Positions 1 through 61,400 of a DNA stretch of 64,000 nt are shown here, one piece after another. The position numbers and the translations under genes were made by a program. The stretch lies in sequence record OU343167.1; one strand, written 5' to 3'. How positions within the stretch are numbered: the stretch's first letter is position 1; each line of letters starts with the position of its first letter. Under the pieces are notes generated by a model. The model did not search any database. It was not told the DNA's origin and saw nothing but the letters and a program-made list of their open reading frames with translations.

Positions 1-200
1 TAGTACTCGGTATCGACCCTGTACATGAGAAAGCTAAACTCATTGGCTTCAACGTATACATCCGTCCATTCGGGCCCAATCATGATCGGATGCATGCGAT
101 GATCAAGAACGATATTCCAATGCGACTTGGTGTACGCGGCCTCAAGAATGCGGCTGGTGTATTGAAAGAAATTATCACATTCGACATATTGTCAGATTGA
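1..200 (+). CDS. 3' end of a gene (partial) encoding a prohead-protease-fold paralog lacking the catalytic Ser
   Basis: Frame starting at nt 3 is open to TGA 198-200: VLGIDPVHEKAKLIGFNVYIRPFGPNHDRMHAMIKNDIPMRLGVRGLKNAAGVLKEIITFDILSD. IRPFGP, LGVRG and KEIITFDIL align by eye to VKPYGP, CSVRS and REISTWDFV of the protease at 54878-55711. Not in the supplied ORF track. Confidence 0.7.
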   Translation, partial: VLGIDPVHEKAKLIGFNVYIRPFGPNHDRMHAMIKNDIPMRLGVRGLKNAAGVLKEIITFDILSD

Positions 201-205
201 TAACT

Positions 206-230
206 AGCCCCTCTAATGAGGGGCTATATG
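206..230 (+). terminator. Hairpin AGCCCCTC-TAAT-GAGGGGCT followed by TATG (possible late promoter for the next gene)
   Basis: Perfect 8-bp stem between two co-oriented genes; TATG at 227-230, then AGGAG and ATG at 250. Confidence 0.65.
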
Positions 231-249
231 TCCCTCTAGGAGCAGAGTA

Positions 250-789
250 ATGAAATTCGAAAAACTACCGAATGCTAAATATCGGGTAACCGTTTCCTTC
301 GATGAAATGCGCCAACGTATGGTCGCTGGTATTCGCCGGGATCTTGCCGTACTCGGTGAAGAACGAGTAGAAGCAATCGTTGAAAATGCATTTGGTTTGA
401 GTCAACTTCACCTGTGGGAGAATTCTTCTTTTGTTAAGAAGAATGAACTCCTGTTGACAGGAATCGAATTAGGTCATCCCCAAGTAAAAGTATCTTCACT
501 TGAGAATATTATTCTTCGTTCTCTAGTAGTAGATGCAAATCGTGTATGTGCTACTATTGATAGTTGGTCCATTCAATATAGTAACACCATCAATACACCA
601 CATGTATTGATTTTGGATGTTACCGCAGCAGGTCCCTTGGCCCGTGATCTGAATGCCCTTTATAATCTGCTTCCTCTTACAGTTGGGTTTAGATATCAAC
701 TGAATGACAATGAGCAGGTGGTTGATATTGTAGGTATCGATATCCTCTATGAAGATGATTTCGATAATCCTGTATTTAAAGATAAATAA
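250..789 (+). CDS. Prohead protease paralog, probably catalytically inactive (179 aa)
   Basis: SD AGGAG. Blocks PNAKY, NSS..ELGHP, DANRVCATI, AGP, VGFRY, DIVGIDIL match PNADGY, NSS..EFKHP, DDNRVCAHI, YGP, CSVRS, EISTWDFV of the protease at 54878-55711. Confidence 0.8.
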   Translation: MKFEKLPNAKYRVTVSFDEMRQRMVAGIRRDLAVLGEERVEAIVENAFGLSQLHLWENSSFVKKNELLLTGIELGHPQVKVSSLENIILRSLVVDANRVCATIDSWSIQYSNTINTPHVLILDVTAAGPLARDLNALYNLLPLTVGFRYQLNDNEQVVDIVGIDILYEDDFDNPVFKDK

Positions 790-842: not shown

Positions 843-1547
843 ATGAATCAGGTTTTCAACGCTGTAAAATCCATGTTCATTCCGTCTCATCGTGAAGTGT
901 TCGGTAAGGCAATTCGTGATGTAGAACATGATATGGATTTCTTTGAAACCATAATGGACGCTAGCAGTTATAGTCCAACTGAACTCCCTAAAGGCAAAGG
1001 AGAGAGTATGTCTATTGATGTCCTTACTGTCGATGATCTTCCTTTGCGGGGTGATCCTGAGGCAACTTACAAAGTAACTTCTACTTTGGATTTGTATCGT
1101 TGGGTTAATGGGGAATATGTTGTACATAACCCTTACCTCGATCCAGTCGTGCAAAGTTTTGGTGAAAGAGCAGTGATTGTTGATCCAACCGCAACTCTGC
1201 CACATCTGACCGAGGAACATCTCCGTAAAGGTGGTGACATCAGACTGGCCATGGTTTATAATGTTCGGGCTCTGCGTGAAGATCTCCGTCGCATGGAACT
1301 TCTGAACATTTCCATGGAGTCGCTGCTACCGCGTAATCTCCGTGTTAAAGACCTTGACGTACCAGGTATGTTCCTTTCCACTAACCACACCATCTTGACT
1401 CGTCAACTGAAGTCCATCATGCGTGGTAAAGGTAACTATGATAAATATGTCGTAGAAGGCCTGGCTCGCATGGGTGTTGATGTATGGTACGATGAAGCTA
1501 AACGTAAAGTTGGCTTTAAAGATGGCACTTTCGTGGCGCTGGTGTAA
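843..1547 (+). CDS. Hypothetical protein (234 aa) containing a tail-fibre-like bead motif
   Basis: Long ORF with AAGGA SD; aa 60-93 resemble a repeat of the collagen-like fibre at 24077. Confidence 0.85.
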   Translation: MNQVFNAVKSMFIPSHREVFGKAIRDVEHDMDFFETIMDASSYSPTELPKGKGESMSIDVLTVDDLPLRGDPEATYKVTSTLDLYRWVNGEYVVHNPYLDPVVQSFGERAVIVDPTATLPHLTEEHLRKGGDIRLAMVYNVRALREDLRRMELLNISMESLLPRNLRVKDLDVPGMFLSTNHTILTRQLKSIMRGKGNYDKYVVEGLARMGVDVWYDEAKRKVGFKDGTFVALV

Positions 1548-1820
1548 ATGTCTGTCTTCGGTTATGTATTGACGTGGACTCAGGAATTTCACATGTGGTT
1601 CCTGATAGCTGTTCTCGCTGCTTTCTTTGCTCTTTATCTAAATCATCGGTTTAGGTATCTCATCTACGTGCCATTTGAAAAGATTGGCAAACGTGATTTC
1701 ATTAAGATGTCCCTTACTTCAATTACAATGCTGTTGTGTATTGTCGTTGTATTTGGGGCTACTCTACGAATGATCGAGATGAAAGAGATCGATAGAGTAT
1801 GGTCGATTGAACAGCGATGA
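1548..1820 (+). CDS. Small membrane protein (90 aa, two hydrophobic segments)
   Basis: ATG directly follows the upstream TAA; hydrophobic runs WFLIAVLAAFFALYL and ITMLLCIVVVFGATL. Confidence 0.75.
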   Translation: MSVFGYVLTWTQEFHMWFLIAVLAAFFALYLNHRFRYLIYVPFEKIGKRDFIKMSLTSITMLLCIVVVFGATLRMIEMKEIDRVWSIEQR

Positions 1821-54877: not shown

Positions 54878-55711
54878 TTATCGCATGTAAGCAGGTACAC
54901 GAATCGGCTTCTTACGCGACCAACCTAGTTGTTGAATTAGATCAGTAACGTCTAGATTAGGATCAGATTCCATACCGATATTAGCACGCTTCTGTGCTTC
55001 ATCCTGCATCTTCCAAAGGGTAGCAGGTGTGATGATAACTTCGGTATCGGAGAAACTTTCCAAAGCAGGGGAGGTATATTTGTTAGCAATATAGATACCA
55101 CCCTCACCGACGAAGTCCCAGGTGGAGATTTCCCGTGTATACTTAATACCACGCATTACGTCGTCCTGTGTGATAGAACGAACGGAACAATAGGTATTGA
55201 TGCTTGGGTTATCCAAAGACTCTTTAAAAATGTGACCAAACGGACCGTAAGGTTTAACCTCACCGACGACCATTTTAACAGTCTTACCATTTTCATTCTT
55301 ACCGGGAACAATAGTCAATGCACGGATATGTGCACAAACCCGGTTATCGTCGATCATACGAATACGTTGCAGGTATTGACGATCATCCATCGGTTGACGA
55401 ACAACACGACCATCAATCATCAGGTCTGTAAACGGTTCAGGGTGTTTGAACTCCATGAAGAGAACACCTTTCTTAAGGCGACGCATCAGGGAAGAGTTCG
55501 GATCAAACATCGCAACGCCACTGGCTTCGTCATAGAACATACCAGCAGAGTTATGTGTACCATAGGCACCCAGAACTACAGTATAATAACCGTCCGCATT
55601 CGGCGCAAGAATTCCTTTTTTGTCCGTACCAGCTAACATAGTGCAGCCAATACGTACCTGATTCTGCGGAGAATTTTGGACACCAAAAGAAGATTGTGCC
55701 AAAGGATGCAT
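54878..55711 (-). CDS. Prohead (head maturation) protease, phiKZ gp175/T4 gp21 family
   Basis: EFKHP (His90), CSVRS (Ser176), TWDFV (Asp199); C-terminal ALE-S and GME-S self-cleavage-type motifs; synteny upstream of vRNAP genes. Confidence 0.85.
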   Translation of the reverse strand: MHPLAQSSFGVQNSPQNQVRIGCTMLAGTDKKGILAPNADGYYTVVLGAYGTHNSAGMFYDEASGVAMFDPNSSLMRRLKKGVLFMEFKHPEPFTDLMIDGRVVRQPMDDRQYLQRIRMIDDNRVCAHIRALTIVPGKNENGKTVKMVVGEVKPYGPFGHIFKESLDNPSINTYCSVRSITQDDVMRGIKYTREISTWDFVGEGGIYIANKYTSPALESFSDTEVIITPATLWKMQDEAQKRANIGMESDPNLDVTDLIQQLGWSRKKPIRVPAYMR

Positions 55712-58432: not shown

Positions 58433-61400
58433 TTGTGGTTCCTCGATAGAGAGCAGCTACGTGCTTGGAAAGAGCTTGCTGCAAGATTGTAGTGGTCGCA
58501 ATCAGTTTAGGGGACATGACCATCCGTTCTTCAACCGAAGTGTTGCCGAAGATCAGACCAATCGGAGTACCGTCTTCACATTCGTTACGGCCATCCATTA
58601 CCCGAGAGAATACAGTTTTCATCTGGTTCGCTACTACACCTTTGTCACCAGTACCACAAGGGATATCATGGTCGATGTAGATTCGGATAACCATGTTGTC
58701 AGGTTCAAGCATTTGACCTTTAACACGGAAGGATGCGTCGACTTCACCTGTGAATTCTGGTTCGTTCAACGACTTGGCCCTATCGGCTCTCTCTTTATCA
58801 GATGCTCTGGCTATCTTCTGAAGATTACTGGACATGTCTTCAATGTCACCATGATAGTAACATTCGATTTTAGAGATAGTCCCTACGACTTTAGCACGGG
58901 GTGCATTAGCCGAAAGTTTCTTCAGTGTTTCAATAGCAGCGGCACCAAACAGAGAGTTCTCGGCCATTTCGGGGTCTTGAATAGTACATAGAATTGAATC
59001 CAAGTCTACGTGTTCTCCAACTTTGACCAAATTCTCAATCGACTGATCAAATCGAACAGTAATGTTCTTGATGTCAGTTGTCTGAGTATTAAGCTTAATA
59101 GCCACGTCTTTACTAATAACAGATCCGTCTTCAAGTGTATCAAGGTTATCGCAGAATGCAACACGAACCATGACACCAGCTTTCCAAAGAACTTGTCCAG
59201 GGGTATAACGATCTTCGGTAAAATACTTACTATTGAAAGTAAGCGTATCACCGCGTTTGAACTTATCACCCTTCTTAAGTGTGGTAACGAGAGTATGCGG
59301 ATAGTTTACACCCGCAGCAGTACCATGGACGGTTCCAAGCTGAGAACTAAAGATCTCACCGTCAGCATATTTAACTGTAATGCCATGACCGTCTACTGCA
59401 ATCACCTCTCCATCTTGTTCGGCGGCAGACGCAAAGATCGAACTGGTACGTTGAGCGATAATCTGCTCATAACCAGTGCGAAGAGGAGTTACCTCATAGC
59501 CATCTGCATAGATACCTTGCTGTTGCTGAATACTAACGAAGTTAATCCGTTTCGGGTCATCGTTTGTTGTAGCAACCCCGGTGAGAGCACCGGTAGATAG
59601 CATCTTAGCGGCGCCATCCTTACCTTTCTCAAACAACCGAGTTGTACCACGCATGCTGTTGAAGTTAGCATCAGGAGATAGATAAGCGATTACACCCACA
59701 TCACCAGAGTCTACAGTGGATTCAGAAACTACACCCACGTCAGATTCATGGTAGATACGTGTACGGGCAACCATTGAAGTCGACCCACGACCACCATCAC
59801 CACGATAAGTCATGGCTTCTTGCTCACGCAAGTTAGCGATTGGGTTAGAATCTTCAATAGTAGCTACAGTTGGGTCAGATGCAATCTTACGCCAAACTTC
59901 GTGTTGGTCCATCACGATCTGTTGATCCGCAGAACCTTCACGGTTGTTGTAGATACGAACAGCGCGGTTCAGACTACCGTAGATAGTTCCTGCCATGCGT
60001 TCATAACCACGATAGCGCATATATGCACCATCTACTTCTGCTGGTGACCAGTCATTAGTTAGCAGCTCTACGGAACGATACAGTAGCCCTTGGAAATCAG
60101 TAGGCTCTTTCATTTCTTCCAGAAGACCTTTTGTGATCGGGTCAACGAAAGAAGTAAACAAGCCATCGATTTCACGAGTGTATCGGGCAGACATACCAGC
60201 TTCTTCTAATAGACGGAAGTAAACATCACGCCGGTCAAAGTCCCATCGAGAGAACTTCTTCAAAGATTGATGGTAACGTTTCAGCCCGGACAACACCAAT
60301 GTCGCACGATAATCTTGACGACTGAATACAAGGATCTCATCAGAGAATGCCAGTGTATAATCATCAGGACTAACACTAATGCGAGTGCCACGCGGATGGC
60401 TCTGGTATTGAACTCCAAGTGTATCAAGTAGAGTGGACAGGCCTTGGCGATAACCAAGAATGAAACCAAGTGGAAGCTCTTTGTTAGCAACTGAAACTAG
60501 AATAGCTTCAAGAGGAGCTTTAACCTGATTAAGACCTAGGATATCTACCATGGTGCCCATGGGTTCAAGTTCATTACCTTCTTTAACATAGAACTGAGAC
60601 GAGCTGTCAACTAGAATAGGTAACCGATTATGGGCGCCTACTACAACCATCCCATCTTTCTCTAATGCTTCTACCGAAATACCGTAAGTCTTTTGGAAAT
60701 ATTCGGCATGGTCATCGAACTTAAAATAGAACTCATTTGCTCCGTTCTTGAAAGAACGATAAGCTCTACCCAATGCAGAGTACACTCGCGGTAGAACGAA
60801 CATAGACTGGTCTAGTTCTGCATAACGCACCTCAGTTACAGAGACATCGTTATTATCTCTTGCCCTAACACCAATCTGTCGAATCAACCAAGTATCGTAG
60901 TTGTTTTCTGCTCGTTCAGAACGTGTAACGAATGTCTTATTGTAATAACTTGTCAGAGCAACTTTAAGTGGGTTTACTTTACGGATTGGAATATCCGCAC
61001 GTTGCAGACGCTGACGATAAGTTACACCATTAGAACGGAAACGTCCATCGCGATCGATAACTGGAATACGGAAGCGCAGTTGAGAAGGTCGGCCACGAAT
61101 AGGCTTGACTGTTACAGTGAACGACTGATAATGGTTCATCGCGTCACGTACTTCTTCCATACGAACATCAGTTACTGCGACACCTTGTGCTTGAACAGAC
61201 AAGATAGATTGCATGATGTCTTTAGGTAGCAGAGTCTTCGTGTACTTACGCATCATCGATTTGTGAATAGAACCCAACATCGATTTATCAGTAATCGTGG
61301 ATTTATCAGCAAACTGTTCGACTGGTACTTTAAAGTCTTCTTCTTCATAAACCATCGCCTCAGCGATAGTTTTACCAGATCCAAATGGATCAGGAATAGA

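Follow-up and report, generated by a model that had tools for sequence, protein, structure and literature searches.

Two adjacent, probably non-catalytic paralogues of the S80 prohead protease in a PhiPA3-related jumbo phage

Prohead proteases of phiKZ-like phages and their cryptic paralogues

The S80 prohead proteases, among them phiKZ gp175 and SPN3US gp245 (MEROPS S80, PF20034), are remote relatives of T4 gp21 (Peptidase S77) and of the herpesvirus assemblin fold, with a His-Ser-Asp triad (PMC5694885). In SPN3US gp245, the catalytic residues are H77, S153 and D178 (Ali et al. 2017, PMC5694885). Auto-cleavage of this enzyme is abolished by a Ser-to-Ala exchange, and its C-terminal tail is both auto-cleaved and required for prohead entry, with truncated gp245 not being incorporated (PMC7411985). 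Ali et al. 2017 additionally described truncated, presumably inactive 'cryptic' paralogues of the protease, namely SPN3US gp117, 201phi2-1 gp206 (145 aa) and PhiPA3 gp143 (136 aa), reported that some Erwinia phages have two copies, and remarked that the length of SPN3US gp118 would be suited to completing gp117 (PMC5694885). A literature search for later functional work on the cryptic paralogues returned none after that 2017 report. In RefSeq and GenBank, 201phi2-1 gp206 and gp210, Phabio gp193 and both tandem genes of HPP-Temi are labelled 'head maturation protease', an automated label that is misleading for proteins that have no nucleophile.

We analysed a stretch of 64,000 nucleotides (hereafter, the window) that is 100% identical to positions 124001-188000 of OU343167.1, the ~302-kb genome of the PhiPA3-related jumbo phage Pseudomonas phage vB_PaeM_phiLBG22, to which vB_PaeM_PS119XW and HPP-Temi, both classified in the genus Pawinskivirus, are closely related. 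Two short genes at its start, ORF136 and ORF179, belong to a widespread jumbo-phage family, PHROG 7478, for which Ali et al. 2017 used the term 'cryptic protease'. The first-pass annotation of this DNA had supposed that such proteins were undescribed in phiKZ-like phages, which proved mistaken, as the 2017 report (PMC5694885), PHROG 7478 and the GenBank labels of HPP-Temi already cover the class; what is new is descriptive detail, i.e., the residue pattern, the selection data, the recurrence of tandem pairs, the metabolic neighbours and fusions, and a recombination patch. The orthologue of ORF136 in PhiPA3 is gp143, of equal length and in the same slot, and like the other cryptic paralogues, both phiLBG22 proteins are short (~125-180 aa for the group), C-terminally truncated and remote from the true protease. 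They differ from SPN3US gp117, which was reported with Ser and Asp and no aligned His, whereas ORF136 and ORF179 have Gly in place of the Ser and keep the His. Furthermore, the ORF179 type, to which PhiPA3 gp142 belongs and which carries a helical insertion, was not named by Ali et al.

Position, homology and active-site residues of the pair

The window start cuts ORF136, of which the 3' end remains at 1-200 on the plus strand (65 codons at 3-197, stop at 198-200); by alignment to the protease, the codons of Gly114, Arg116 and Asp132 lie at 129-131, 135-137 and 183-185. In the source genome the gene is complete, encoding 136 aa at genome positions 123790-124200 (L002:7790-8200). ORF179, assigned by profile-profile homology, occupies 250-789 on the plus strand and encodes 179 aa with a helical insertion of ~25 residues close to the N-terminus; its codons for His76, Gly146 (the Ser176 position), Arg148 and Asp164 lie at 475-477, 685-687, 691-693 and 739-741. 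The active S80 prohead protease, with H90, S176, R178, D199 and a C-terminal tail, is encoded at 54878-55711 on the minus strand (Pfam Peptidase_S80, E 4.8e-97; phrog_3014, E 1e-91), such that one genome contains short paralogues of 136 and 179 aa and a full-length enzyme of 277 aa.

On the plus strand, the major capsid protein gene is followed by two small ORFs, a non-virion RNA polymerase subunit gene (gp123-like), a gp124-like gene (687 aa), ORF136, a hairpin, ORF179, a gp125-like gene, a 90-aa membrane ORF and a bidirectional terminator-like hairpin, beyond which lie the convergent virion genes gp126-128-like. The hairpin between the two short genes (206-225, plus strand) has a perfect 8-bp GC-rich stem and a 4-nt loop without a T-run; it is the sole such hairpin in the window, where the chance expectation is 0, and it is possibly a partial terminator or an RNA-stability element. 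The gp125-like gene (843-1547, plus strand; 234 aa) has homologues in phiKZ, 201phi2-1, PhiPA3, Psa21 and Phabio. The predicted membrane ORF (1548-1820, plus strand), which HPP-Temi does not have, is the final gene of the co-directional cluster, and the terminator-like hairpin at 1834-1855 (nine pairs, seven of them G-C; not assigned to either strand) separates this cluster from the convergent virion genes. A sigma-70 scan proved irrelevant to this phage type, and the 201phi2-1 transcript-boundary paper makes no mention of gp204-210.

Pairwise BLAST linked the two small ORFs to the protease weakly (E 0.003 and 0.025), and neither reached the PF20034 gathering threshold of 23.4 bits, with ORF136 scoring 21.0 bits (E 2e-4) and ORF179 16.5 bits (E 0.005) against Pfam S80. 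Profile-profile comparison was decisive despite these weak pairwise scores. Against an alignment of 39 S80 proteases, hhalign returned a probability of 99.1% (E 5.3e-19) for the ORF136 subfamily, 92.2% (E 6e-7) for the ORF179 subfamily and 98.9% (E 2.6e-17) for the combined small family, and the two subfamilies matched each other at 97.7% (E 2.5e-12). The phrog_7478 profile ('head maturation protease') matched ORF179 at E 1.8e-10 and ORF136 at E 5.8e-5. On the strength of the profile-profile comparisons, we consider it close to certain that ORF136 and ORF179 are remote homologues, and paralogues, of the phage's own S80 (phiKZ gp175-type) prohead protease. This bears out the kinship that the first-pass annotation had read from aligned blocks, with coordinates and reading frames that were right; the N-terminal block aligns as well.

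The region of the protease matched by the short paralogues is the core of the catalytic domain (residues ~35-203), and in the combined-family alignment ORF179 residues 57-166 correspond to protease residues 71-201. This core shares with phiKZ gp175 and SPN3US gp245 the Glu-x-x-His-Pro, Gly-Pro, x-Arg and Asp motifs. Unlike those enzymes, the short proteins have no nucleophile Ser and do not have the N-terminal ~32 residues, the loop after the His, or the C-terminal ~75 residues with the auto-cleaved tail; both stop a few residues from the Asp-bearing strand, in line with the earlier remark that ORF179 had no cleavable tail.

The structural evidence was divided. A first model, built from 7 sequences (pLDDT 63), matched other short paralogues as well as S80 and T4-type proteases in a Foldseek search of BFVD, and an AlphaFold2 model of ORF179 from a 117-sequence alignment was confident (pLDDT 88.9, pTM 0.81), comprising seven strands and several helices. 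Neither model had a significant match in a Foldseek search of the PDB; for the pLDDT 88.9 model, nothing reached E <= 0.001 and the best match, at E 0.16, was an unrelated protein. A truncated and diverged core may lie beyond the sensitivity of Foldseek. Hence, of a fold check that had been set beforehand, the search for a protease fold in the PDB came back empty, and the sequence profiles and BFVD matches came out in support of protease kinship. Weak and non-significant Hcp-type matches also appeared in the Foldseek search of the PDB. Profile (HMM) searches of PDB sequences returned nothing, whether started from the short family or from S80, and NCBIfam holds no family for the short paralogues.

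Against the single T4 gp21 sequence, hhalign gave low probabilities for the S80 and the short-family profiles (E 0.028 and 0.0018, respectively), and as the S80-T4 gp21 link was not reproduced with this single sequence, we take it from the literature. T4 gp68, which was considered as an analogue (genes 68 and 21 were fetched by the accession given in PMC2993671), was rejected. It resembles neither gp21 nor the short family, with a blastp E of 3.2 and an hhalign probability of 0.06%, and its own PHROG is 1049, 'head scaffolding protein'. The likeness of T4 gp68 to the short proteins, i.e., a similar size, a gene beside that of the prohead protease and absence from mature heads, amounts to a weak analogy only.

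Based on the alignment with H77, S153 and D178 of SPN3US gp245, we assign H90, S176 and D199 as the catalytic triad of the window enzyme; in its numbering, H90, S176, V177, R178 and D199 are invariant in the 39 S80 proteases. H90, S176, R178 and D199 align with H76, G146, R148 and D164 in ORF179 and with H46, G114, R116 and D132 in ORF136. The Gly that had been noted at the Ser position of both proteins, as well as the His and Asp noted in ORF179, are thus confirmed, and ORF136 keeps its His and Asp likewise. The nucleophile position is Gly in ORF136, in ORF179 and in every orthologue of each, and no substitute Ser, Thr or Cys near the nucleophile strand is conserved among the orthologues: position 144 of ORF179 varies between T, A and S across orthologues, and ORF136 has no such residue. 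As the Ser is replaced by Gly, with no conserved Ser, Thr or Cys close by, and the Ser-to-Ala form of the SPN3US enzyme is dead, both proteins are in all likelihood inactive as Ser proteases. Since the C-terminal region needed by the SPN3US protease is missing, prohead entry via the tail route would be unlikely for the short proteins.

The gp125-like neighbour shows a weak, putative likeness to the protease. Its residues 56-130 match protease residues 175-243 by blastp at E 7e-5 in a reproducible register, with 0 of 997 shuffles matching the real score, and hhalign assigned a probability of only 2.4%. The notion of a split protease whose missing C-terminal half would be the gp125-like protein is thus suggestive by BLAST and shuffling and unsupported at the profile level. 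The likeness echoes the remark of Ali et al. on SPN3US gp118 and gp117.

Conservation of the pair and a family across jumbo phages

Both genes evolve under strong constraint. Relative to PS119XW and HPP-Temi, dN/dS was 0.05-0.07 for ORF136 and 0.07-0.09 for ORF179, at dS of 0.2-2.2 and as low as in the adjacent virion genes, and the orthologues are intact in 9/9 related records and in PhiPA3. We therefore hold with high confidence that ORF136 and ORF179 are functional genes kept by strong purifying selection, so that they would be inactive as enzymes and yet functional. ORF136 is 43% identical to PhiPA3 gp143 (E 8e-25) and ORF179 30% identical to PhiPA3 gp142 (E 7e-12). Taking homology, residues and selection together, the two genes probably encode adjacent, non-catalytic paralogues of the S80 prohead protease that diverged from it long ago.

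In phiLBG22 and PhiPA3 alike, both short genes lie between the gp124-like and gp125-like genes, with the order of the two copies swapped between the phages. The number of copies in the gp124-gp126 slot varies, with two in PhiPA3 and in 201phi2-1, one in Phabio and in Psa21, and none in phiKZ; since the syntenic slot of phiKZ is empty, basic head maturation does not require the short genes. An HMM scan of the whole phiLBG22 genome found exactly two copies. The first-pass annotation had spoken of an array of paralogues and had pointed upstream of the window for more, and at HMM sensitivity no additional copy was found upstream or elsewhere in the 302-kb genome. Two weak HMM matches, at 58450-58677 (plus strand) of the window and at genome positions 236786-237196 (minus strand), are antisense to real genes and were set aside as chance. 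Compared with PS119XW, a ~2.2-kb patch centred on the pair is 69-89% identical, with flanks at ~100%, and within this patch PS119XW resembles HPP-Temi. Judging from these identities, the patch is evidently a recombination cassette. The two short genes are accessory.

A word-index protein search recovered close relatives only, and a full HMMER scan was needed for the distant ones. Scanning 1.84 billion representative proteins yielded 105 relatives at E <= 1e-3, from which, with phage copies added from fetched loci, we assembled 81 distinct proteins of <= 200 aa. An HMM from 84 short-family sequences, a set that includes ORF136 and ORF179 themselves, matched the two at E 1e-27 and 4e-32. Four residues are near-invariant among the 81 short proteins, namely Glu (81/81), Pro (79/81), Arg (80/81) and Asp (80/81). 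By contrast, the His is retained in 30 and lost in 51, the Ser position holds Gly in 42, Ser in 18, Ala in 13 and other residues in 8, and the full His-Ser-Asp triad occurs in only 5/81. The Ser-to-Gly replacement is complete among the orthologues of the pair and the commonest state in the short family. Among longer relatives, the 240-272-aa matches with a His-Ser-Asp triad all carry a Ser-x-Arg motif, and four matches of 245-263 aa (P0172, P0203, P0211 and P0213) have Gly at the Ser position.

Tandem pairs recur in PhiPA3 and 201phi2-1 and in unrelated metagenomic jumbo-phage contigs (151 + 177 aa and 201 + 199 aa). We considered two ancient subtypes behind these pairs and rejected the idea, as all pairwise identities fell within 12-35% and did not separate clearly into two groups. 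The genes next to short family members in three unrelated jumbo-phage contigs encode thymidylate kinase, DHFR, thioredoxin, dUTPase, thymidylate synthase, an AAA ATPase and a SNF2 helicase. Moreover, family members occur fused to a DHH-phosphoesterase-like domain, a fragment of RNA polymerase beta and a dNMP-kinase-like domain. Some fusions might be gene-calling artefacts; the DHH fusion is found as an identical 462-aa protein on independent contigs and is the sole one confirmed in this way.

Possible roles of a protease that does not cut

Pseudo-enzymes are catalytically dead paralogues that retain a binding cleft, and like pseudo-enzymes generally, the short proteins have lost the nucleophile, kept nearby residues and remained under purifying selection. 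As the Glu, the Pro, the Arg two residues past the lost Ser and the Asp are kept, the residue at the nucleophile position is small and the His is dispensable, ORF136 and ORF179 may act by binding rather than by cutting. Such proteins would work in the cytoplasm, unpackaged and possibly as a heterodimer, where, until the prohead assembles, they would hold on to the protease or to the short motifs at which its substrates are cleaved. The residue pattern fits a preserved cleft or a preserved fold core, and the invariant Glu, Arg and Asp may instead be a purely structural salt-bridge core; from sequence considerations, we favour the binding mechanism, and with it a regulation of head maturation, as a tentative possibility.

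About as likely, and held just as tentatively, is that a protease-derived domain has been re-used outside head assembly, e.g., as a protein-binding module that serves nucleotide metabolism, replication or transcription, or that takes part in conflict with the host, for instance as a decoy. The nucleotide-metabolism and helicase neighbours in three unrelated contigs and the fusions to DHH-phosphoesterase-like, RNA polymerase beta and dNMP-kinase-like regions point away from head assembly, and in phiLBG22 itself the pair comes after the non-virion RNA polymerase subunit and gp124-like genes, with the variable copy number (0-2 in the slot) and the recombination patch both being typical of accessory genes. 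As these usual neighbours and fusions are nucleotide-metabolism genes, a role in head assembly gains no particular support from our survey. The roles proposed in the first-pass annotation, in which the paralogues would be poisoning subunits, substrate adaptors, shields or anti-defence decoys, are thus candidates at most. However, the gene order of jumbo phages is scattered, which makes neighbourhood weak evidence, the major capsid and virion genes likewise flank the cluster in phiLBG22, no similarity to known defence or anti-defence proteins was seen, and, the confirmed DHH case apart, the fusions are open to the doubt about gene calling raised above.

An involvement in head assembly could also take the form of transient prohead core or scaffold components that the protease degrades at maturation, as happens to T4 gp67 and gp68, and that would hence be missing from virions. 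Descent from a prohead core protein would suit such a role, as would the RefSeq notes for 201phi2-1, in which virion mass-spectrometry detection is marked for gp211-213 and not for gp205-210, and T4 offers the precedent of non-essential core proteins degraded by gp21 (PMC9958956); S/A/G-x-E sites are present in both ORFs, though chance would give them. We nevertheless consider this role improbable, given that the short proteins have no equivalent of the C-terminal region that the SPN3US protease requires for incorporation, that T4 gp68 is not homologous, that the phiKZ slot is empty and that the usual neighbours are metabolic genes. A residual peptidase activity, through another nucleophile or in complex only, is still harder to credit: the His and Asp kept in both ORFs and the five family members with a full triad, some of which could be active, are set against the Gly that replaces the Ser in both ORFs and all orthologues, the absence of a conserved Ser, Thr or Cys nearby, the loss of the His in 51/81 proteins and the inactivity of the Ser-to-Ala SPN3US enzyme. 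Finally, truncation at both ends, the lost nucleophile and the label 'cryptic' given by Ali et al. might suggest functionless, decaying remnants of a duplicated protease gene. This we regard as scarcely credible, as dN/dS of 0.05-0.09 over the dS range given above is already refuting, the ORFs are intact in every relative, four residues are near-invariant among distant homologues, and the predicted fold is confident.

Returning to the two more plausible readings, the cytoplasmic binder and the re-used domain, they might be joined in a broader and more speculative picture. A pseudo-protease family widespread in jumbo phages, with members that are often heterodimeric two-gene pairs, would have been re-used as a binding module, either reading cleavage motifs or the protease in the cytoplasm or serving complexes of nucleotide metabolism or transcription, the latter being hinted at by the fusions to DHH-phosphoesterase and RNA polymerase domains, and the gp125-like protein may be a further fragment of the ancestral protease gene.

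For the family as a whole, we offer a definition in which the Glu, Pro, Arg and Asp are kept, the nucleophile and the His are dispensable, tandem pairs recur, and neighbours and fusion partners are metabolic. The prohead protease of a phiKZ-like phage cleaves a three-residue motif thousands of times, and this activity is held off before the enzyme enters the prohead; dead paralogues that are conserved as a family are evident candidates for its regulator.

A divergent patch around the pseudo-protease pair

Comparing phiLBG22 with its close relative PS119XW, we found ~100% sequence identity flanking the pseudo-protease pair on both sides, while identity dropped to only 69-89% through the 3' end of the gp124-like gene, ORF136 and ORF179 (the two short S80 protease paralogues of 136 and 179 aa) and the gp125-like gene. 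Inside this divergent patch, which spans window positions of about -750 to 1500 (L002:7250-9500 in the source-genome locus), PS119XW resembles another close relative, HPP-Temi. The patch is a ~2.2-kb recombination cassette with the pseudo-protease pair at its centre.

Directly 3' of the ORF136 stop lies a perfect GC-rich hairpin of 8 bp with a 4-nt loop (window 206-225), which is unique within the window and lacks a T-run. Another inverted repeat, richer in AT, lies just past the stop codon of ORF179, at about 793-813. The cluster ends with a predicted 90-aa membrane ORF (1548-1820), at whose position the annotated ORF of PS119XW is shorter and HPP-Temi has no gene and essentially no DNA identity. 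At 1834-1855, a bidirectional terminator-like hairpin of 9 pairs, 7 of them G-C, separates the plus-strand cluster from the virion genes that converge on it.

Short S80-like genes elsewhere

PhiPA3 also carries a pair, gp142 and gp143 (L003:9092-10026), in which the order of the paralogue types is inverted compared to phiLBG22, the 179-like gene coming first and the 136-like gene second; gp142 has Thr in place of the His and Asp in place of the Ser. Tandem pairs of short S80-like genes recur in unrelated metagenomic jumbo-phage contigs, surrounded by nucleotide-metabolism and replication genes (loci at L017:6001-7389, L020:6530-7534, L019:6406-7600 and L021:7001-7441). One metagenomic gene fuses a DHH-phosphoesterase-like domain to a pseudo-protease domain, and the identical protein occurs on independent contigs.

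Within phiLBG22, the short-family HMM gave weak matches (E about 0.01-0.05) at window 58450-58677(+) and genome 236786-237196(-). As the former is antisense to an evident 1453-aa RNA polymerase-like gene and the latter to an evident plus-strand operon adjoining thymidylate synthase, we took both candidate copies as chance matches.

The gp125-like neighbour

Residues 56-130 of the gp125-like protein (window 843-1547) align with residues 175-243 of the S80 prohead protease (blastp E 7e-5), in a register reproducible in several phages and with a score that none of 997 shuffles reached; profile comparison of the two gave a probability of just 2.4%. What survives in this segment may be the C-terminal portion of an ancestral copy of the protease.
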